Positions 15,481-47,518 of a stretch of 64,000 nt of DNA are shown one piece after another (the stretch's first letter is position 1; every line of letters begins with the position of its first letter). Origin of the DNA: Hyaloraphidium curvatum SAG 235-1 (Eukaryota > Fungi > Monoblepharomycota); contig JAIVFI010000028.1 of assembly GCA_025558095.1 (NCBI GenBank), positions 496,001 to 560,000 of the forward strand, written 5' to 3'. The position numbers were made by a program, and so were the translations under genes. The notes beneath the pieces were generated by a model. The model ran no database searches. It worked only from the letters and a program-made list of their open reading frames with translations, and was not told the DNA's origin.

Positions 15481-17395
15481 TCACTTCTTCGACGCCTTCT
15501 TGATGGCGGCGTCGACCACCTTCATCAGCTCGAGCACCTTCTCCTCCTGCAGCCTCCCCGCCACGACCTGCACCCCGATAGGCGCATGCAGGTACGTCTC
15601 CGGAGTGTAGAACCCGTACAGCGCGCCCTCGAGCTCGTTCTGCGCCTTGAAATCCGCGGGCACGGCGTCGCTCGCGAGCACCTTGCCCCCCGGCACCACG
15701 CCCGCCGAGAGGTCGAGGAGGTTGTACATCACAGTATAAACGCAGGCGTGCACGTTGGTCGCGCTCTGGTGGTGCGGCGTCGAGGGCAGGCCGGTGGTGG
15801 GGCAGACGATGCCGTCGATGCCGGCCTCGAGCATGCGGGCCAGCCACCGCTCGCGGACGGCGTTGCGGTGGTTGTGGTAGTCCCAGAGGTCGCCGACCCC
15901 CACTGTCTTTCGGATCCGGCGCAACAAGGCGATGAGCAAAGCAGAAGAGACGCACGGCGAGGGTCCCACCTTGGGCTCCGAGGCTGCGACCCACTTCATC
16001 CCGTCGATCAGGTCCTCCCCTCCCTTCTTGAGCACCTCGAACAGCCTGTCGTTGTACGCCCCGAAGATCTGCCCCGCGCCCAGCGCCCAGATCTCCAGCG
16101 CATCCGACACGGGGAACTCGACCACCTCGTGGCCCTCGGCCTTGAGCGCCGCCACCGCGCCCTCGATGACCCTCCGCACGGGCGGGACCACGCGGTACAT
16201 GTCGGTGTCGATGAAGTAGCCGAAGCGGAGCTTGGCGGGGAGCTTCGCGGGCGTCCAGGCCATGGGGATGCACTCGGGGTCCTTGGCGGGGCCTTGCTGC
16301 ACCAGGAGGCGGGTGTACAGCTCGAGGTCGTCGACGGAGCGGCCCAGGGGACCGTTGGTAGGGACGATGAGCTGTGACGGGGTGAAGGTGAGCTCCACGG
16401 GAGCCAAGGCAGGGCGGGAAGCGGCCCACGTCGGGGGAGCCCTGGTCGAGAGCTTTGCAGCCGGCGTTGGGGAAGCGCCGGGCGGAAGGCTTGAGGCCGT
16501 AGACGCCGTTGATGGACGCCGGGAGCCGGACCGAGCCGCCAATGTCGCTGCCGACGCCGAGGAAGCTCGCGCCGCACGAGACGATGCAGCCTTCGCCCTG
16601 CAGGTCTCGCGGAATGAGCAAGGCCATTGCCCGGCAGACAAAGCGGAAGACCCACCCCGGACGACCCGCCGGCGCCGAGCTTGCGGTTGTGGATGTTGCG
16701 GACGTGTCCCCAAAGGTGGTTGTCGGATTCCCACGTCTTGCAACCCGACATCATCGACCGTCAGCAAAGAACACGGCATACCAACAACGGACCCACCATG
16801 AGAGCCTGCGGCACGTTGGTCTTGCAGTAGAGCACCGCGCCGGCGCCAAGCAGGATCTGCACGACCGACGAGTCGCGCTCGCTGATGTCGTCGTACCACG
16901 CGATGAAACCCCACGTGGTCCGCGTGCCCTTCTTGTCCTGGTCGTCCTTGATGGACACGGGCAGGCCGTGCAGCGGGCCCGTCGGCTTGCCGGTCTTGGC
17001 GAACTCGGCGTCCAGCCCCTCGGCGCGCTTGATGGCCTCGTCAAAAAAGATCTCGGTCAGGCAGTTGGTGAGCTGCTGCGCGAGGGCAGCGCGGTGGCAC
17101 ATCGCCCCTGCCAGGCGGGAGGAACGCGTGGGTGACGTCCGCGGGCGACATCCCTCCCGAACGCACTGGTGACCTCCGCCGACTTGAGCTCCCCGCTGGC
17201 CAGCTTCGCCACCGCCTCTGAGGCCGTAAGCGCCGTGATCCGCCGCTCCTCCTCGCTCAGCTTGCTCTCGATGAGGGCGAGCCCGCCGTGGTCGCCCGCG
17301 GCGTCGATTTCGGCGTCGGCCAGGCGCCATTCCGCGGGGATCGCGGCGAGGCGGGCGGCCGAAGCCTTGGCGGCGACGTCCTGCCACGTCGGCAT
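15481..17395 (-). CDS. Amidase-signature enzyme (acetamidase/FAAH-like), multi-exon
   Basis: GPLHGLPVSIKD (Lys), KTNVPQ, GGSSG|GEG, GSDIGGSVRLPA, GVYGLKPS, PIGVQVV. Confidence 0.93.
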
Positions 17396-34441: not shown

Positions 34442-37157
34442 TCACGAAGCCATAAGCGCGCACCGCGCCAGCAGCTCCCCGTCTTCCGTGTCCCCGTCGA
34501 AGCTCCAGGCAAACACCCCCCTCAGCGCGTTGGCTTTCGCGTAGTTGACCTTGAGGTCGATGTCCCTCGGCATGTCGAACGACCACCAGTTCCTCGACAC
34601 GGGGTCGTACTTGTAGCTCTGCTGCGTAGTGTTGTGCACGTACACCGTGCCGGGGGAGGCCTTGAGCACGCGGTAGTCCTCGATGCCCTGCTCGTACGTC
34701 CCCGGTGCGGGCCCGGTGGCGGGCTGGTACAGGCCGTTGGTGCCGCCCGCGTTCACGCCCGTCCCTAGATAAGGAAAAACGTGGTTAGCATCCGTATCAT
34801 CGTGGGGGAAGGCAACGGAGGGACTCACATCCGCGGCCGTAGAACGGCACGCCCACGAGCAGCTTGCCCGCCGGCATCCCCGCCGCCAGCAGCCTCTCCA
34901 CGGCGTCCTTGGTGTTGTAGTACCGCATGCTCGGGTTCGGGGAGGAGAAGGACGGCGACGCGGGGTCGGGGTACAGGTGCGACTGGAAGTTTGTCGGGCC
35001 GGCGGCCGCCCACGCTCTGTAGATCGGCATCCGATCAGCTCCAACTGGTGGCGATTGTGCGGCGCAGAAACCCACCCGTTGTAATCGTAAGACATCAGGT
35101 TGGCCCAGTCCAGGTGCTTGCTGTACTCCGCCGGATCCGTGGCGTCGATCTTGTCCCGCCCCGCGCCCAGCGCGACCGTCAGCCCGTACGCCTTGCCGGT
35201 CTCGAGCGAGAGCGCGTCGAGCTGGTACCGGAACTCCTCGAGTAGCAGGTTGAAATTGACCTTGTCGTCGGGGGAGACGGTGTTGTAGGGGAGGCCGACG
35301 ACGCCGGGGTATTCCTGCGGGTCGCGGGGTCAGGAACAGAAGCCGATGGGCGCGGGAGTTGCTGCAAACTCACCCAGTCGATGTCGATCCCGTCAAAGAT
35401 CCCCGCCGCCGCCCCCGGCCCGCCGCGGCCGTCGAACAGGGGCAGGTTCCCGCGGATGTAGAGGTCGACGCAGCTCGCCACGAGCCGCTTGCGCGAGACC
35501 GAGGTGGATGCCGCCGCAGAGAACCACTTGCTCCAGGTCCAGCCGCCCAGGGAGATGAAGGCGCGGATCTTGGGGAAGCGCGCCTTGAGCTTCTTCAGCT
35601 GGTTGAAGTTGCCCGCTCTGCGAACAAGGGTGGGTCAGCCATCATCTGGAGGAGCAAAAGAGAAGGACCCCACAGTGGCTGGTCCCACTTGTCCGCCACG
35701 CCGTCCACGGAATCCGCCGTCGTGTACCCCATCCCGTAATCGCTCCACGCGTCCCCCCCGTCCCCGTTGCCCGACTCCATCCTGTTTATGATCCCGCACT
35801 CGTAACCCCCGTCCTTCTGGTAGATGTTGCCGAACGCGTAGTTGACGAACGTCACGTCCTTTGCGTTGGGGAACGCGGCGACCTTTTTCATCTTGAACTG
35901 CCGCGCGTAGACGCCCCACTGCGTGAAGTAGGCGCCCACTTCGGGCTGCACGGGGAAGCGCAGGATGCTGCCGGGGGGGATGGTGACGGTGGGGATGGGG
36001 AGGGAGCCGGTCGCCGTGGGGAGGACGGGGGGAGTGTAAGGCGGGGGTGGGGGGGGAGCAGTGGGGGTTCCGGAGCCGGTGTCGGTGGTGCCGCTGCCGG
36101 TGCCGGTGCCGCTGCCGCCGCCGCCACCGGAACCGGGCGTGCATCCCCCGGAGTTGCACTGCCCGAAGCCGTTCTGGCATCCGGTACCGCACCATCCGTC
36201 CCCGAGGCCGCAGTATCCCAGGGAGGAGCAGCAGTAGGGGATCGGGCAGGAGCGGCCGTAGAGGGCGCCACAGGTGCCGTCGGTGGACGCGGGGTAGGCG
36301 AGGGGGCAGACGCCGGGGGTCGGGTTGGGTGGAGGGTTCGTCGTTCCCGGGCCGGGATCGGTGGGCTCGGGGTTGGCGGGGGTGGTTGCGGGGCCGGAAG
36401 GGGTTGTGCCGGCGCCGGATTGGCAGGTGCCGGCGTTGCAGTTGCCGAACCCTGGTGCAAGGAGGGAGAACGGGGTCAGCACATGCGGCAGGCATCCGGA
36501 CAACGAAAGAAACTCGCCGATCTGGCACCCGGCACCACACCAGGGCTCGCCCGAGCCGCAGAATCCGGTTGACGAGCAGCAATAAGGCGCCGGGCAGGCC
36601 AGCCCGACCGCCGCGCCGCAACCGCCCGTGTAGGAGATGGGGTACGTTGGGCAGTTGACCGAGCCGGACCCCGGGGCCGCGGCGGTGGTGGCGGGCACGA
36701 CGCGCGTCGTAGTCGCCACGGGCCTCGGGGTGGTCAGGCGCTTGGAGGTCGAGCGGCGTTTCGTGGTCGTCTTGCGGCGCTTGGTGGTCGTCTTGCGACG
36801 GCGGGAGGTTGTCTTCTTGAGAACGACGAGTTTGCGAGTGGAGGATTTTCGGGGTGTCGTTATCCTCCGCCTCGTCGATGTCCGCCGGCGGGTTGTCACC
36901 TTCTTCGCCGGGGCATTCGGCACCAGTTTGACGCCGACCTGGCGTGACGAGCGGTCCGAAGCGAGCTCGGCCCCGTCGACGTCCGTCGACCCCTCGTCAT
37001 CTCCCCGCAGGCTGCCGACAAAGAGCTCTGCCGGCTGCGCAATCTGCCGCTCCCGCAGATCGTGCCGGGCGGCGGCGGAGGAGGACGGGGCGGCGCCGAG
37101 CAGGGCCGCGAAGAGAGCGATGCCGAGGAGGCCGAGGGCGGCCAGCCGGGCGCCCAT
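34442..37157 (-). CDS. Secreted GH18 chitinase with two hevein-like CBM18 modules
   Basis: Signal peptide; K/R/T-rich tract; two CG..C....CCS..G(F/Y)CG....CG.GCQ modules; SLGGWTWS; FDGIDIDW|EYP (DxDxE); MSYDYNG; GVPFYG. Confidence 0.93.
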
Positions 37158-37999
37158 CGCGGCGGGGATCCGCACGGCACGGCGTCCGCGAGGGGCGGGA
37201 GAGTCCGAGAGAAGATGCAGCGGCGGGCGAGGGGGCACGAAGGGTCCGCCGGAACCGGCAGACAAAGCGCTGCGGCGGGGGCCGACTGGCGCTGCCGGCG
37301 CCGCGGGATCCGGGCCGCCGGCGCAAGTCCCGAGATGCAAATGGTCCATAATCAGTCTAGAGATCGTCCGAGGTGTGTTCGTGAATGCTGCGGGGCACCG
37401 CCGTGGTCATCCTCTTTGGGTTGCGGCAGGTTGGCTGCGCCACGACGGGGACGCGCTTCGTCACCTCGCCGCAGGCGTCCCTGCACCGACTTCTTGGAGC
37501 CTGCACGCAACCCAGTTGCCGATCCAGCACGATCGGCGCCAGCAAAAAATTCAGTGGTCCCGCTCGGGCGATTCCGCACAGTCTTCCCGCCGATCACCCC
37601 TCAAACGAACTGCACGTCCCCGCGGCAGATCCCCCACGCCGCAGCAAGCAAAAAGGAGTCGTGGCTTGGCCGGATCCCTGGGGACAATTCCGATGACGTT
37701 CCGTGCAGGGGCAGATTGGTCGGGACGGTGGGACGGGGGCCCGCGGGCCAATGATCTCACAAAGACGGCCACGATCGCGTAGCCGGGCGGCGGTTAGGAG
37801 GAGCGGGCCGCGAAGTGCTCGGAGCGGACGTTCCATGACTGGCAGCTGGAAGACGCTTTCTGTTCCATTCTAAATGGTATTGGCGACAATGGATCAAGCA
37901 CATGATATCAACACGTTAGGCATCGAGTGCCCGCCCGCGACCGGGCCCTTTCTCTATAGCGCCTCCCGTGCTCCAGCTTCCCTCCCGCTCGCCATCCGC

Positions 38000-38946
38000 C
38001 TAGTCCGCATAGCACGGCATCGCGAAGCACGTCTGCGCGTCCACAATCTGCAGCTTCCGCGCGTCGATCTCCTCGAACAGGCTCCGCAGGATGCCCGGCG
38101 CCGAGGACTTGTAGTCGTGCGTGATCGAGACGTAGCCGTACTGCTCGAACCAGCCCAAGCCTTCTCGGAGGTAGCCCCTGTACTCGTCCTGCGAGATCTC
38201 CTGCCAGTCCTTTGGACGGGGGGGGGAGGTGAGCCTTCCGCCGTGAGCGACCGCCAGGGGACGCAACGCACCTGCGGGTCCACATTCCACCCGATGCTGG
38301 CGAAGCCCAGCTCCGCCGCAAGGTCCAGCAGCGCCTGGTTTGAGCTCCCGAACGGAAACCTGAACAGCCTCGGGTACCTTCCGATGACGCCCTTTATCCG
38401 GTCCGCCGTCTCAAGGATCTCGCTCCGCGCCCGCTCGATGGGTATCGAGGTCATGTCCGGGTGCAGCATCGTGTGGTCCGCGATGCAGTGCCCCTCGTCG
38501 TGGGCCCGTTTGAGCAGCTCCCGCGCCTGCGGGTTGTTGGCAAGATAGCTTCCGATGACGAAGAACGTCGCGCTGGCGCCCCGGGAGGAGAGCATGTCCA
38601 GGATCTGCGGCGTGTAGGGGGGGAGCGGGCCGTCGTCGAAGGTGAGGTGGATCTGGTTGGGGTGCTTGCAACCCGAGATGATCCACGCCGGCGGCGCGCC
38701 CGTAGCGAGGGGTTCAGCCGGAGGCGGCGCCGGGGCGGGGGGGAAGCACACGCTCCGTGCGGTACACTGCGCCCGCACGCAGCAGCCCGAGGCGCATTCT
38801 GGGCCCGAGGATTTGCAGTGCTCGCCGAGGGGCTTCGGGCGGGGTTTGGCGGCGTGCGGCGCGGCGGCGGGGGCGGCGTCGGCGAGGAGGGCGAGGGCGG
38901 CGGTAGCGGCGAGGAGGAGGGCGAATCGCGCGGAGAGAGATTTCAT
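38000..38946 (-). CDS. Secreted CE4/NodB polysaccharide (chitin) deacetylase, 2 exons
   Basis: Signal peptide, small Cys-rich module, TFDDGP, ATFFVIG, HTMLH, FRFPFG, WNVDPQ|DW. Confidence 0.9.
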
Positions 38947-39602
38947 GGCGGCGTTGCGCGCTCCGGGCAATGGTTCCGAGGTGGCTGCGGCCGATAGCGG
39001 CCCGGGAATTGCAGGTTTTGAAGTGGCCGTGTCGCCCGGACCCTCAAACCCCAAACCCCTCTGCCCGTTTTCCCATCCCTTGACCAAGATTCTGCCGCCG
39101 GATTCTGGCGACAAGGCTCCAAATGAAAGCCCACTTCCGAGTGCTTAACTGCAGCCTGCTGAGCCCGGGAAGAGGCGGATCAACCAAACTCGGGCAGCGG
39201 GAATCGGCCCTTTCCGGAGAACGGCGGCGCCCGGGTCAGTTGGACGTCATTTGGCTGGCCCGTTGGACGCAGGGCATACGTGAAACTCGCTCGGAGGTGG
39301 ATGGCTTGACACCCGGCTACGGACGATGGCATTTGCGGGATTATGGCCGGGGCGCCGGTCGGCCCATTGCGCAGTGCTCTAGCCCGGATTACGCGTCCGA
39401 CGTGGCGAAGAGCTCGAGGTCGCGGGCGGCGGAAAGCAGCGGGAGGACACGAAACGCGCAGCAATCGCCTCGTCCTCATCCCCGCGGGTGAAGCACGCGC
39501 GCGCGCCACGCCTGCGGCTGTCGTCCCCTCATTGGTCCCCGGGCTCCCCGCCTCGTTTTGCATTGCCGGGCTTTTTGGACGCGTTCCGATCGCCATCTGA
39601 CC

Positions 39603-41044: not shown

Positions 41045-42082
41045 TCAACAGCAGAGGTTTAGATCGGTGCGCCAGGGGCACCGGGGCACGAATAGCTCAC
41101 CTTCCGACCCAGAATGGTCGACGGGTCCCGGCTCCCTCTCCTGCACGCCGAGCACAACTGAGGCGAGGCTCCTGCGCTGTACTACCTGTGCATCCAGCAG
41201 CAGGGGGGCCGAGGGGTCAGTGGATTTCCCCTTGCGCTTACGGAGGGTCGATGCGGAGAGCAGGGCCGCGTCGGAGGAAGAAGGGGCTGGTTGGGCCGGA
41301 GGAAGGTCAGGCTCTGCTGGGTCGTGCGAGGTATTCTTGCGCTTGAGGTACAAAGTGATGGGATTCTGCGCCGGATCACCGACGAAGAGGGCGATCAGGT
41401 TCCTTGCTAGGAGACAAAGCTGTTCGAAATTGGGACGCTCCGTGCACGGATCCGCCTGCTGCTGGGCGCCGTTTCCGCAGAAGGCATCCAGCACCTGCCG
41501 CAGGAGCGCCTTCCGTCCTCGAGTCGCATCGACTTCCAGGTTCCAGACGGTGCCCTCCTCGACCTCGATGGGAGGCAGGCCGTCCCTAATGCGCACGACT
41601 TCATAGCCAAGGCTGCAAAGCACTTGGCTTTTGAAGACGTCTGCGTCATACTTCTCCGCGTGCCAGCGGCAGCCATCGTAGAAGAACGCGATTCGGCGCT
41701 CCTGTTCGTCGTCCTCCCCGGGGAGAATGAGCTCTGCGTCGGGCGAGATCCATCCGGTGACAGTTTTCTCGGTCGTGGCCACCCGAATTCTCGTGATCAT
41801 CAGCTCACGGATCCTCGATGCGTCCCAATCGCGCACCAGTTCGGGCGCCACGGCGGCCAGGTAGCCCACGAAGGCATGAATTTCTTCGACGGATCTCCCC
41901 GTGAGCTTGCCCTTCCCACACGAGTCCAAACCCGTGCACAGGCTGCGCCAATGACCGTGTTCGCAGATGACTTTCTGGCCGCCGCATTTCTTGCAGAAGT
42001 ACATGTGCTTGCCGTGCTCGCAGATGCCGGACCCTCCGCACTCAATGCAGAGGTAGCGGCGCCGGCCATGCTCGCAGATCAT
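41045..42082 (-). CDS. CxxCGG..ICEHG zinc-repeat protein fused to a Vsr/DUF559-like endonuclease domain
   Basis: Three to four repeats (CKECGGSMICEHG, CIECGGSGICEHG, CKKCGGQKVICEHG), then SPD..IAFFYDGCRWH..D..K..L..LGYEVVRIRD. The frame stays open upstream to an acceptor-like site at ~42140, so the start is uncertain. Confidence 0.7.
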   Translation of the reverse strand: MICEHGRRRYLCIECGGSGICEHGKHMYFCKKCGGQKVICEHGHWRSLCTGLDSCGKGKLTGRSVEEIHAFVGYLAAVAPELVRDWDASRIRELMITRIRVATTEKTVTGWISPDAELILPGEDDEQERRIAFFYDGCRWHAEKYDADVFKSQVLCSLGYEVVRIRDGLPPIEVEEGTVWNLEVDATRGRKALLRQVLDAFCGNGAQQQADPCTERPNFEQLCLLARNLIALFVGDPAQNPITLYLKRKNTSHDPAEPDLPPAQPAPSSSDAALLSASTLRKRKGKSTDPSAPLLLDAQVVQRRSLASVVLGVQEREPGPVDHSGSEGELFVPRCPWRTDLNLCC

Positions 42083-42377
42083 TGAGCCTCCGCATTCTTT
42101 GCAGCCATGGCGATGCTTGCCATCTTCGGCGCCATCGAGCAGCTGCGGCGACGAAAGTCAGGCTCCACACCTCCACGCCCACCGATGCACCCCCGCTCAC
42201 CTCAGCGCGACGTGCGACGTGTATCTAAGTTTACCTGCTCGATTGCCGGCGCGATTTGCTTGTCCTCGACGCGATGCGGGCCCGCGGTTTTGTCTCAAAA
42301 CGCAGTGCCACAGCTAAGCCCCGAGCAGAAATCCCTTCAGAAATCCACAAGGGTGTCTCCCTGCCTCCACCGCGTCG

Positions 42378-44073
42378 ATGGCATCGCAGCAGGCTCCGTC
42401 CGACGCGCCCTCGGGCCCCGGGAACCCGGGCAGCCTTGGCCCGCACGATGTCGGGGGGCTCACGTGGGCGGATTACGCCAAGATGCCGCTGGATCTGCGC
42501 GACCACGTCAAGGCTCACTGGGAGAAGGAGATGGACGTCCTGCTTGGCTTGCTCTGGTGTAGGCCACGTGCGCCGTCGGCTGCGCAACTCAATGCTCATG
42601 GACGCGCCGGACAGACAAGAAGATGATGAACATCGACCAGCTTCGCCGGGGAATCGAGTATCTGGAGCCTGAGGCTTATGCTACGTGGACCTACTACGGA
42701 AAATGGGCGGCCTCCATGACCAGGATCCTCGTCGAGAAGGGAGCCATCACGCAGGAGGAGATCGACGCCGAGCTCGGGCCCACCCAGTCCGAGGATAAGA
42801 TTGCCTTCAACGTCGGTGACCGGGTGACCGTCAAGCCGGAGCTCACCAAGTCGCGCTGGAGGAAGCCTCAGTGAGTGACATCGGTGTAGCAAGCATTCGT
42901 TCGCGGCTGAGCACCGGCTTTATTTCCAGCCTCCGCACCCCGGGCTACATCTACGGGTGCACGGGTATCGTCGAGCGCGTCGCCGGCGTGTTTCCCAACC
43001 CAGAAGTCGGAGCGTTCCGGACCTCGCATAAGATCATGTCGCCGCTTTACAGGTTGGTCCTTTGATATGTTTCATTTGGCATGGTTCTGACGGAAGGGAC
43101 AGGGTTCGGTTCAACCTCAAGGACGTCTGGCCCGAGAACCCGGACGGCGAAAACAACAACACCACCATCGACGTCGAAATTTACCAGCACTGGCTGGTCC
43201 CGGCTTCGTCGGCCGCGGCGCCTGCCCCCGCACCGGCGCGTTCGGCGCACGCTCATTCGCACGAGGGGCACTCCCACGATGGGCACTCGCACGGCGGCCA
43301 CTCGCACGACCATGACCACGACCACGACCATGACCACGCCGGCGGGGACCATGGTCACAAGCACGAAGAGCGCGCCCAGGTGGAACAGGCCGCGGTCGAC
43401 AAGGAGGGCGAGCCGCACCCCGAGCAGACCCTCGCCGCCGCCCTCTTGAACCTCTGCGTGGCCAAGGGCATCGTGACCAGGGAAGAAATCAGGAGCTCCA
43501 TCGACCAGCAAGACACGCAGTACGCGGGGATGACGGCGGGACCGATGCTGGTCGCGAAAGCCTGGGTCGACCCGGAGTTCCGGGAGAGGCTCGTCAAGGA
43601 CTGCAAGGCGGCATCGGCAGAACTGGGGCTGAAGACCACCACCGGTGCCGAGCCGGAGATGGTCGCGGTCCTCAACGAACCTGGAAGGCACAACGTCGTC
43701 GTTTGCACCTTGTGCAGCTGCTGTGAGTTGCTCGTGCCTCCGTCTTTGTTTCCGGCCTCACGCGCTCGACGCAGATCCCCGCGCGGTGCTTGGCTTTCCG
43801 CCGGACTGGTACAAGAGCCGAACGTACCGCAGCCGGATGGTCCGCAACCCACGCGCGCTCCTCGCTGAAGCCTTCGACCTCGTCATCCCCGAATCGACCG
43901 AGCTCCGCGTCCACGACTCCAACGCCGACCTGCGCTACATCGTGATCCCGGAGCGGCCGGCGGGCACCGAGGGCTGGAGTGAGGAGAAGCTGAGGTCGCT
44001 GGTGACCCGCGATACCATGATAGGCGTCGCGGTGTGCAAGGTTCCCAGCTCGGAGGGCACGCCCAAGATTTGA
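42378..44073 (+). CDS. Fused beta-alpha cobalt-type nitrile hydratase, copy 1 (5 exons)
   Basis: Beta part: GPHDVGG, WEKE, LRRGIE, YYGKW, FNVGDRV, KPH|LRTPGY, PLYR|VRF. His-rich linker. Alpha part: [22 protein letters not shown]|[40 protein letters not shown]. Confidence 0.93.
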
Positions 44074-44252
44074 TGCAGATCACGTGCAGGACTAGCCTTG
44101 GCGGACAGTAGTTTCTCGTTGATTTTGCGCGAGGAAAGATCTGACGGAGGATCCGATCGACAATCTTCTTCGTGCATGGGCGCTCCCGATCGCGCAACGC
44201 CGTCAACAATCTGTCCCCCTTCTCGAATCCTCCGTTCCGTCAAGAGCACACG

Positions 44253-45932
44253 ATGCCATCTGACACGGGATCGCCCGAGGACCATTCGGGTCCGGGACAC
44301 CCCGGCACCCTCGGTCCGCACGACGTAGGCGGGCTCACATCGGCGGAGTACGCCAAGTTGCCGCTCGACCTTCGGGAGCACCCCAAGAACCAGTGGGAGA
44401 AGGAAATGGACGTGCTCTTTGGCGTCATATGGTGTCGGTGATTTGCATACGTGGAAACCATGTGTCCGTACCGACGCGTTTGCCGGGCGACAGACAGGCA
44501 GCTCATCAGCCTGGATCAGTTCCGGCGCGGCATCGAGTATTTGGAACCGGAGGCATACAGCACGTGGTCCTACTACGGCAAATGGGCTGCCACGATGACC
44601 CGATCTTTGATCGAGAACGGAGCGGTTACCCAAGAGGAGATTGACGCCGAGTTGGGACCCGTCGAGTCGGAGGAGAAGGTTGCCTTCGCCGTCGGCGACC
44701 GGGTGACCGTCAAGCCGGAGCTCACCAAGTCGCGCTGGAGGAAGCCGCAGTACGTCGTTTCGTGGGGTGCTTGGCTCGCGGTTCCTGGGCCAACCGAGCT
44801 CTCCCAGCCTCCGGACCCCAGGTTACATCTTTGGGTGTTCCGGCATCGTGGAACGCGTTGCCGGCGTGTTTCCCAATCCCGAGGTTGGAGCCTTCCGGAT
44901 TTCGCACCAGATTATGTCGCCCTTGTATCGGTCGGTCTCTTCGTTTGTCGCGTTGAGCCCGAACTCACGCTGACACCGCTCGACCAGAGTCCGCTTCAAC
45001 CTCAAGGACGTCTGGCCGGAGAACCCGGACGGCGAGAACAACAATACGACGATCGATGTGGAGATCTACCAGCACTGGCTCGTTCCTGCCTCAACTGCTC
45101 CGGCTTCTGCCCCCGTCGCAAGGTCGGAGTCGTCTCACGGCGGACACTCCCACGACGGACGCTCGCACGGCGGCCACTCGCACGACCATGACCATGATCA
45201 TGATCATGACCACGCCGGCGGGGATCACGGGCACAAGCACGAAGCGCGGGCCGAGGTGGAGCAGGCGGCGGTCGACAAGGAGGGCGAACCGCACCCCGAG
45301 CAGACGCTGGCGACCGCCCTACTCAACATCTGCATTGCAAAGGGCTGGACAACGAGGGAGGAGATCCGGAAGATGATCGAGGACCAGGATGCTGCTTACG
45401 CAGGGAATGTCACCGGGCCGATCCTCGTGGCGCGTTCGTGGGTCGATCCCGCCTTCAAGGAGAGGCTAATCCGGGACTGCAAGGCTGCGGCGGCGGAGCT
45501 GGACCTGAGAGCGGATTCTGACGACGAGCCGGAAATGGTTGCCATCGCCAACGGGCCCGGGGTCCATAATGTGACCGTGTGCACGCTTTGCTCTTGCTGT
45601 GAGTCTTCTCCGTGGCATATTCGGTCGCGTCAACCTCACTGCCGCAATCAGATCCCCGTGCTGTACTCGGGTTCCCACCAGATTGGTTCAAGAGCCGCAC
45701 CTACCGGGCACGGATGGTCCGGGCGCCTCGGGCCCTCCTCGCCGAGGCTTTCGGCCTGGTCGTCCCGGAATCCACGGAGCTCCGCGTGCACGACTCGACC
45801 GCGGACCTGCGCTACATCGTGATCCCGGAGCGACCGGCCGGAACGGAGGGATGGAGCGAGGAGAAGCTGAGGACCCTTATCACGCGCGACACGATGATCG
45901 GCGTCGCGGTCTGCAAGGTGCCGGCGTCCTAG
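44253..45932 (+). CDS. Fused beta-alpha cobalt-type nitrile hydratase, copy 2 (5 exons)
   Basis: Same architecture and the same four intron positions as copy 1; TVCTLCSC|YP; His-rich linker [27 protein letters not shown]. Confidence 0.93.
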
Positions 45933-46008
45933 CGGGGCAAGGTTGCTTCATGTTCGAAGATGTCTACCAGAAGATGTGCTACAGAGTGAATTCCGTTGAG
46001 CAAGCTGG

Positions 46009-47518
46009 CTACTCGTCGTCCTCGTCCTCGTCGTCATCTTCCTCGTCGGAGGACTCCTCTTCGGCCTCGCGGAGCCACTTGAAGAAGGGCTCGGCCTTCT
46101 TCCTGATCTCCTTGCTGACGTCCTGAAGCCCCAAAACTCAGCCACGCACGAACGATACTGCACGACGCCAACACACCTTCTTGACGTACTTGCTGCTGGG
46201 CTTGTCGGCCCAGGCCAGCATCACCTCCTCGTCGATCAGGTCTTCGTCGTACAGCAGTTTGAGAACCTTGATGACCTTGGGCATGAGCTCCTCGGGGTAC
46301 ATCTCGCCGACGAGCCGCTCGATGCCGCCAAGCAGGGCCTTCTGGGCCTTCTCGGCCTTGGAGCCCTTGAGGAAGGACGCGAGGAGCTCCTTGCGCTTCG
46401 GGAGCTGCTGCTCGATGCCGGCGTCGAAGAGCACCTGCGAGAGCACGACGAGGGCCTTGTCCCCGCGGATCCCGAGCTCCTTGGCCTTGGCCGCGATCTC
46501 CTCGTCGTCCATCCCGGGCTTGACGAAATCGCCGAACGCGTCCAGCGGGTTCCCGTCCTCGTCGTCGTCGTCGTCGCCCGTTGCCGCGAGCTTGGCCACG
46601 GCGCCCTGGAGCGCCTCCTTCTGCCGCGCCGCGATGGCGGCCGCCGACACGTCCTGCGACCACTCGTGCTCGTCCTTGTCGTCCACGACCAGGCGCGCGG
46701 CCTCGCGGGCGATCTCGTCGTCGTCGTCCCCGTCGGGGCCGCCGGGGGTCGAGGGGGCGACCTCCGAGGTGGGCGAGCCACCGCCGTTGCCCAGCGCGTC
46801 CTGCTTCTTCTTCTTGAGCGCCTTCTCGGCCCTGCAGGCAAGGATGCGGATCAGAAAAAGCCGTCCGGGAGGCCACGTGGGACCCACTTGGAGTACTGCT
46901 TCTGCTTTTCCGGAGGCGGGTGGTTCAGGATGAACGTGACCAGCTTGTGCTTCATGTCCACGTTGGTCGTCTTGCCGCACGCCATGCACTTCTTGGTGAT
47001 GTCCCCGTTCTTGATGATGATGTCCGTCTCGGGGTTGGCGCAGTTGCCGCACAGCACGAACTTGTCGATGAACTTGTCCAGCAGCTCCTGCAGCCGCGAG
47101 GCGTCGTGCGCGCCATTGACGATGTACCGGTCGTTCTTCTCGTCCATGGAGACCTGCGCGCCGAGCTCGCAGCCAAAGAACTTGGTCGGGTCTGCGGGGG
47201 GCGCGCCGGGTCAGCAAGGCCTCTCGACACCGCGCCGGCCGTAGATCCGGCGCGAAACAAAGGACACGCACACGTCGCCGGCCTGTGCAGCGCCTTGGCG
47301 ATGTCGGACATGTTGGGGATGAGCGTCTTGATGCCGTTGCCGCGGCCCTCGATGGTCCGGGTCAGCCGGGGCATCTTGTAGCGGTAGAACGGGTCATCCC
47401 GGTTCGCAATGTTCTGGAAAGGTTGGAAACCGGTCAGATCCGAGGCGGGGAGGGCCCGGTGGGTGCCGGGGGCCGGCCCGCGGCCGGGTCGGGAGGCGGG
47501 ACCCACGATGGTCGCCAT
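46009..47518 (-). CDS. TIF5: Eukaryotic translation initiation factor 5
   Basis: [43 protein letters not shown] zinc finger, W2 domain [25 protein letters not shown]. Confidence 0.96.

Follow-up and report, generated by a model that had tools for sequence, protein, structure and literature searches.

The window analysed here is a stretch of 64,000 nucleotides of the freshwater fungus Hyaloraphidium curvatum (contig C28, positions 496001-560000), and it holds two neighbouring genes, NH1 and NH2. These are very probably old tandem paralogues of the eukaryote-type single-chain nitrile hydratase (NHase) that choanoflagellates and algae are known to have, and elsewhere in the genome there is a third paralogue, NH3, which is more distant. 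Several lines of evidence (sequence, fold, conservation, expression, selection) give good support to their identity as single-chain cobalt (Co)-type NHases. Neither the class of enzyme nor its architecture or chemistry is new, and GenBank already labels NH1 and NH2 as nitrile hydratase, so what is gained concerns distribution, not mechanism. What is new is the taxon: the Monoblepharomycota, a phylum of fungi, have this enzyme, with three copies in H. curvatum, contrary to the loss that has been inferred for fungi.

Expression, domains and age of the tandem pair

Positions 42000-46300 of the window were read and spliced at GT..AG sites. NH1 and NH2 are arranged head-to-tail on the plus strand, and each gene has four GT..AG introns of 50-60 nt, with the same positions and phases in both. 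Intron 4 is in phase 1 and cuts the Tyr codon that follows CTLCSC, in NH1 between C393 and Y394. The spliced models are residue for residue the same as two proteins named "nitrile hydratase [Hyaloraphidium curvatum]" at NCBI (P0122, 492 residues, and P0123, 483 residues), both encoded on one 607,112-bp contig. The exons were joined in local scripts for translation, identity checks and the comparison of substitution rates, and the later database searches were made with P0122 and P0123.

All eight predicted introns are absent, at the exact predicted bases, from X1 contigs; X1 is a public run made from the same organism and was taken for RNA only by guess. Since contigs made from DNA would have kept the introns, this shows that NH1 and NH2 are both transcribed, and that they are spliced as modelled. 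A preliminary description of this DNA had proposed two intact tandem genes that share four intron positions, one of them within CTLCSC/Y, and the models and the X1 junctions agree with it; the differences between the copies that it cited were also found again in both spliced models. One single RNA-like X1 contig, 43775-44433, is unbroken from NH1 exon 5 over the 179-bp spacer to NH2 exon 1, with both exons included. This could mean overlapping untranslated regions or read-through transcription of the pair, but it does not prove one joint transcript.

The Pfam search was run on each exon and not on the joined models. NHase_beta_N matched exon 2 and NHase_alpha matched exons 4 and 5 in both genes, in all cases passing the gathering scores, and a match of NHase_beta_C on NH1 exon 3 was weak and under the Pfam cut-off. 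The full-length proteins at NCBI are annotated with PF21006, PF02211 and PF02979. As expected of a eukaryote-type fusion, the beta domain and then the alpha domain are found within one open reading frame, a His-rich linker lies between them in both NH1 and NH2, and the genes have spliceosomal introns and are expressed from a eukaryotic genome. The alpha motif of NHases separates two metal types: Thr and Tyr (C-T-L-C-S-C-Y) mark the Co type, Ser and Thr the iron (Fe) type. Both copies have CTLCSCY, at residues 388-394 in NH1 and 385-391 in NH2. In a search of PDB with the alpha part, Co-type alpha chains came out on top (P. thermophila 1IRE and P. putida 3QXE, E ~1e-50), followed by Fe-type chains at 1e-44 and the gamma chain of thiocyanate hydrolase at 1e-42.

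The beta part can be aligned in the same way. R71, Y87/Y88, W91 and H146-L-R148 of NH1 correspond to the DEFR, YY, W and HTR of solved beta chains, so that the two Arg (R71 and R148) and the Tyr-Tyr pair (Y87/Y88) of a Co-type beta subunit are present. Over 45 fused homologues C388, L390, C391, S392, C393, Y87, H146 and R148 are invariant, and conservation is 90% or more at T389, Y394, R71, Y88 and W91. The alignments show NH1 and NH2 to retain every residue class that would define an active NHase. In an AlphaFold2 model of P0122 (mean predicted local distance difference test score, pLDDT, 80.8) the pLDDT is below 50 at residues 229-271, that is, the linker is predicted to be disordered, and the alpha domain fits solved NHase alpha chains with template modelling (TM) scores of 0.82-0.93. 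The preliminary description had taken the genes for single-chain NHases of the order beta, His linker, alpha with a Thr/Tyr Co-type motif, and the Pfam and PDB matches, the linker and CTLCSCY all bear this out.

Some observations weigh against this identity. The beta domain of the P0122 model fits solved beta chains poorly (TM 0.35-0.38). The NCBIfam equivalog models, which were built for the separate subunits of bacteria, gave scores below their cut-offs, 239.5, 223.1 and 233.2 for alpha (TIGR01323, cut-off 249.85) and 104, 91.5 and 90.8 for beta (TIGR03888, cut-off 152.2). Neither an amidase nor an aldoxime dehydratase gene was seen flanking NH1 and NH2, and an operon-like nitrile cluster was rejected. 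The nearest amidase-signature gene (window 15532-17108, minus strand; three exon matches to PF01425) is ~25 kb upstream of NH1, and as the genome has roughly 25-30 such genes it may be there by chance. A search with PF13816 (aldoxime dehydratase) gave zero matches anywhere, controls included, and is hence uninformative.

NH1 and NH2 are identical at 386 of 492 aligned positions (78%), while their introns and flanks are beyond alignment. The number of synonymous substitutions per site (dS) between them is ~1.25, which is near saturation, the number of nonsynonymous ones (dN) is 0.139, and dN/dS is 0.11; both genes are maintained under purifying selection. In the trees they are sisters (100/99), and P0121, the NH1-like protein of a close relative, falls outside the pair. 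Together with the high dS this implies that the duplication is old but lineage-specific, and that this fungus has indeed duplicated a fused NHase, as first described. Gene conversion between the copies was considered and rejected: a stretch of 100% protein identity at residues 181-220 has a proportion of synonymous differences (pS) of 0.81, which points to selection and not to conversion. The features are collected in Table 1.

Table 1. Coordinates of the NHase genes and their parts (window positions, except in the last line)
Feature	Position	Strand	Description
NH1 gene	42378..44073	+	5 exons, 492 residues, identical to NCBI protein P0122
NH1 exons	42378-42558, 42615-42870, 42930-43052, 43103-43722, 43775-44073	+	GT..AG splice model
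NH1 beta-subunit domain, residues 1-222	42378..43208	+	introns 1-3 inside; Pfam NHase_beta_N, PDB beta-chain alignments, invariant columns
NH1 beta residues R71, Y87/Y88, W91, H146-L-R148	42644-42646 (R71)	+	conserved; PDB beta-chain alignment
NH1 His/Asp-rich linker, residues 223-279	43209..43379	+	57 residues, 17 His
NH1 alpha-subunit domain, residues 280-492	43380..44073	+	intron 4 inside; Pfam NHase_alpha, PDB, fold
NH1 predicted metal-binding motif C388-T-L-C391-S392-C393	43704..43721	+	Y394 split by intron 4 (43723-43774)
NH1-NH2 spacer, NH1 stop to NH2 start	44074..44252	+	179 bp
NH2 gene	44253..45932	+	5 exons, 483 residues, identical to NCBI protein P0123
NH2 exons	44253-44433, 44494-44749, 44808-44930, 44988-45598, 45652-45932	+	GT..AG splice model
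NH2 His/Asp-rich linker, residues 223-276	45094..45255	+	54 residues, 14 His
NH2 predicted metal-binding motif C385-T-L-C-S-C390	45580..45597	+	Y391 split by intron 4 (45599-45651)
Gonapodya NHase locus	L009:5100-6100 (JADIIX010000110.1)		model KAJ3337738.1 with misread intron at its end; CTLCSCYPRSVLG exon and remaining alpha domain downstream

Further copies and the origin of the fungal genes

Besides the labelled pair, H. curvatum has a third paralogue, and the gene is also present in a second genus of monoblepharids. NH3 (KAI9006877.1, 484 residues, ~52% identical) is a fused gene on another H. curvatum contig, C34. In Gonapodya sp. JEL0774, which belongs to another class of Monoblepharomycota, a fused NHase homologue is situated between SET/Chromo and OCRL-like genes. 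Its NCBI model (KAJ3337738.1, 400 residues) is incomplete, as it runs into a misread intron at its end, but an exon encoding IIVCTLCSCYPRSVLG and the remaining alpha domain lie just downstream, and the gene is therefore probably full length.

Close relatives of the NH genes were found in two Logan assemblies and in metagenomes. An NH1-like gene (P0121, 76% identical) and an NH3-like gene (P0003) occur together in one run, SRR26194948, and this implies that the split between NH1/NH2 and NH3 is older than these two organisms. P0121 and P0004, alone among the relatives mapped, read through an intron at the site of intron 4. The NH3-like contig of this run (L011:3994-13212) is collinear with 286.6-295.8 kb of C34 over ~9 kb and at least seven genes, so it appears that NH3 was inherited in place and that inheritance within the phylum was vertical. 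A tail-to-tail methyltransferase gene is among the collinear genes. When the NH1/NH2 region was compared with the NH1-like contig of the relative (L008), the NHase alone matched. On L001 and L008 the NH1-like gene is a single copy with a divergently oriented NAD_binding_8 gene upstream, a context that the window does not have.

An alpha-domain tree separated 42 fused from 40 stand-alone bacterial-type sequences at one branch (97% in the Shimodaira-Hasegawa-like approximate likelihood ratio test, SH-aLRT), with the fungal sequences among the eukaryotes. A maximum likelihood tree of the 42 fused NHases was made under LG+C20+F+G4 by posterior mean site frequencies (PMSF); neither tree holds any choanoflagellate or apusozoan sequence. 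The monoblepharid NHases form one clade (95/86), which joins the metagenomic eukaryote P0127 (97/91) and then P0136, Prasinococcus and Cymbomonas (97/92), apart from Creolimax, Sphaeroforma and Corallochytrium, and the backbone of the tree is a polytomy. As placed in this tree, their closest named relatives are prasinophyte green algae and not holozoans. The approximately unbiased (AU) test, with groups chosen after the tree had been seen, rejected a clade of the fungal sequences with Creolimax, Sphaeroforma and Corallochytrium (p 0.0037), and also one with the two ichthyosporeans (p 0.0085). A phylogeny against bacterial NHases had been proposed as a check; in the alpha-domain tree the fungal copies did fall on the fused eukaryotic side, and in the tree of fused NHases they did not group with the holozoans.

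The preliminary description also spoke of retention of the gene in the fungus. This is not shown by our trees: with the AU tests and the prasinophyte grouping, retention is unproven. Three readings of the origin of these NHases are all live options: retention, a hidden paralogy, or a transfer that went either to green algae or from them. Tentatively, the monoblepharids may either have gained the fused NHase by transfer between eukaryotes, from a prasinophyte-like green alga, or have kept an ancient paralogue that was lost in all other sampled opisthokonts, and would then have formed three expressed paralogues with different pockets. If this is true, one fungal phylum has a non-corrin cobalt route of nitrile assimilation that was replaced by nitrilases elsewhere in the kingdom.

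Simple vertical retention would mean that the genes descend from the opisthokont ancestor, are orthologous to the NHases of choanoflagellates and ichthyosporeans, and were lost in all other fungi. It would agree with the same order of beta, His linker and alpha in opisthokont protists (Marron et al. 2012), with the presence of the genes in two classes of Monoblepharomycota and with the ~9 kb of synteny around NH3. The single intron of the Monosiga gene, which is located "in the active site" (Foerstner et al. 2008), is also close to the location of intron 4. Nevertheless we find this descent doubtful, as the fungal clade goes with P0127, P0136 and the two prasinophytes, away from the holozoans, and both AU tests speak against it, although hidden paralogy would yield the same tree. 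Ancient common introns were considered as well and had to be rejected, since no intron position of NH1 and NH2 matches one in NH3 (2 introns), Gonapodya (4 annotated) or Sphaeroforma (10). In a search of representatives for the Monosiga NHase, none of six candidates of 494-525 residues had the stretch of 17 His.

The family tree is in conflict with the species tree in other places too, with Corallochytrium beside Paramoeba and rotifers beside Arcella. Bdelloid rotifers (Adineta, Rotaria, Didymodactylos; P0010, P0018, P0027 and others) have many fused NHases, which group with Arcella and other sequences. They look like a further non-vertical case, this one in animals.

Proposed metal site and function

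We infer the metal, the oxidation of the Cys residues, the activity and the substrates of NH1 and NH2 from their sequences. Each polypeptide would consist of a beta module and an alpha module tied together by the disordered His/Asp-rich linker. In the alpha motif C388-T-L-C391-S392-C393 the sulfurs of three Cys, together with two amides of the backbone, would bind a low-spin Co(III), with C391 oxidised to sulfinic acid and C393 to sulfenic acid, and both of these would be held by R71 and R148 of the beta module. The enzyme is predicted to hydrate nitriles to amides, and the amides may then be turned into acid and ammonia, possibly by one of the many amidase-signature enzymes of the genome. The genome also has one gene of the NicO/NiCoT transporter family.

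The two copies differ in the beta part, where NH1 has I67/L70 and NH2 has L67/F70. In the beta subunits of bacteria these positions align to a stretch LDEFR, which presumably lines the substrate pocket (P. thermophila structures). It is thus plausible that NH1 and NH2 have different nitrile preferences. On their sequences, cobalt use and hetero-oligomers of the two copies, both suggested in the preliminary description, are putative.

An enzyme that uses iron, or some metal other than cobalt, is improbable. Fe-type alpha chains do match strongly (1e-44), and the best full-length beta match is to the Fe-type Comamonas enzyme (6e-20). However, the Co-type signature CTLCSCY is found in both copies, its T389 and Y394 are among the residues that are at least 90% conserved in the 45 fused homologues, the beta W91 aligns with the Trp of the Co-type YY.HW, and Co-type chains come first both by sequence and by fold.

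Still less probable is a thiocyanate hydrolase, or another activity of the NHase superfamily. The gamma chain of that enzyme matches at 1e-42 and TIGR03887 scores 196.8, but this is 95 bits short of its cut-off of 291.45 and 43 bits below the score of the NHase alpha model, and the beta part is one continuous domain and not split in two.

It is likely that a Co-type enzyme of this kind matures unaided by accessory proteins; the Monosiga enzyme is reported to do so. A search of the H. curvatum genome with PF21006 matched the three fused genes only, and no stand-alone activator or beta-like accessory gene. This is consistent with a review (PMC7193024, 2020) stating that no activator is known for fusions of the Monosiga type, and that metal insertion does not need the (His)17 region.

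Host, distribution and comparison with known systems

The identity of the models with the NCBI proteins of H. curvatum shows that the host is a fungus and that the genes were already annotated in GenBank. Taxonomy places H. curvatum in the phylum Monoblepharomycota, so that the early-diverging fungus assumed in the preliminary description is confirmed. The assembly comprises 31.9 Mb in 55 contigs. Near NH1 and NH2 are genes for a chitin-binding protein, a polysaccharide deacetylase, a MYND-finger protein and eIF5. Of these, the gene for the Chitin_bind_1 protein adjoins that of the polysaccharide (chitin) deacetylase, 3-7 kb upstream of NH1 (window 35595-39111, minus strand). Directly upstream of NH1, also on the minus strand (window 41045-42082), is an open reading frame of 345 residues with repeated C-E-H-G...C..C motifs, and its matches to the endonuclease folds REase_MTES_1575 and Vsr were weak and below threshold.

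That the contig is an algal or protist contaminant of the fungal assembly, as might be thought because the closest named relatives outside the fungal clade are green algae, is extremely unlikely, since the window is within a 607-kb contig of a 55-contig assembly and its GC content (62-75%) is similar to that of the NH3 contig (66-70%), the adjacent genes include those for the chitin-binding protein, the deacetylase and eIF5, an independent Gonapodya assembly has the homologue between eukaryotic genes, and three runs from two studies, all of one organism, contain the locus.

A search of 1.84 billion representatives with P0122 gave 3,649 matches at E <= 1e-3, of which 360 had E <= 1e-30, and only one representative was more than 53% identical. 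The named organisms among the matches listed are green algae, diatoms, pelagophytes, dinoflagellates, Chromera, Arcella, Paramoeba, Leptophrys, Entosiphon, ichthyosporeans, Corallochytrium and bdelloid rotifers. Among these, fungi with a name are represented by Hyaloraphidium and Gonapodya sp. JEL0774 only, although most entries are nameless and this is no survey of fungi.

Eukaryote-type fusions have been reported from many supergroups, and loss has been inferred in animals and fungi (Marron et al. 2012). That study covered 159 fungi, with Allomyces, Batrachochytrium, Spizellomyces and Neocallimastix among them, but monoblepharids were absent. The view in the preliminary description that fungi are held to lack fused NHases thus reflects the literature correctly, and in the full-text literature we found no paper reporting an NHase gene in Hyaloraphidium, Gonapodya, monoblepharids or chytrids. 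The published inference of loss in fungi can now be corrected, as at least two classes of Monoblepharomycota have intact fused Co-type NHases, and expression has been shown for two of the three copies in H. curvatum. Fungal metabolism thereby gains a probable non-corrin cobalt enzyme, and the question whether eukaryotic NHases are ancestral or have spread by gene transfer gains a new data point. The three natural single-chain NHases, which are probably activator-free, are also possible biocatalysts.

The NHase of Monosiga brevicollis (Foerstner et al. 2008; Marron et al. 2012) is likewise one polypeptide of beta, His-rich linker and alpha, it also has the Co-type CTLCSCY and a spliceosomal intron, and it has no accessory or activator gene. 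The NH1 linker has 17 His, and (His)17 was reported for Monosiga. The linkers are different in that the one found here is an H-x/HD repeat, and three paralogues, two of them in tandem, are found in H. curvatum where single copies were reported from opisthokont protists. The H. curvatum NHases are not placed with the available holozoan sequences; Monosiga is compared here from its published description.

Bacterial Co-type NHases (Pseudonocardia thermophila 1IRE, Pseudomonas putida 3QXE) have the same metal claw, and the structure alignments give 41-48% identity for the alpha domain. The H. curvatum copies also conserve the pair of beta Arg, the YY and the Trp of these enzymes. Unlike in H. curvatum, bacterial alpha and beta subunits are encoded by separate genes together with an activator gene, and there are no introns. 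Thiocyanate hydrolase of Thiobacillus thioparus (2DD4) belongs to the same superfamily and shares the chemistry of a Co(III) Cys claw, but it has three subunits and a split beta. The fused NHases of the prasinophytes Prasinococcus capsulatus and Cymbomonas tetramitiformis have the same architecture as NH1 and are ~46-49% identical to it. The Prasinococcus protein is longer, 607 residues, of which the first 474 align to NH1, and it adds HAD-family Pfam hits (PF13419, PF00702).

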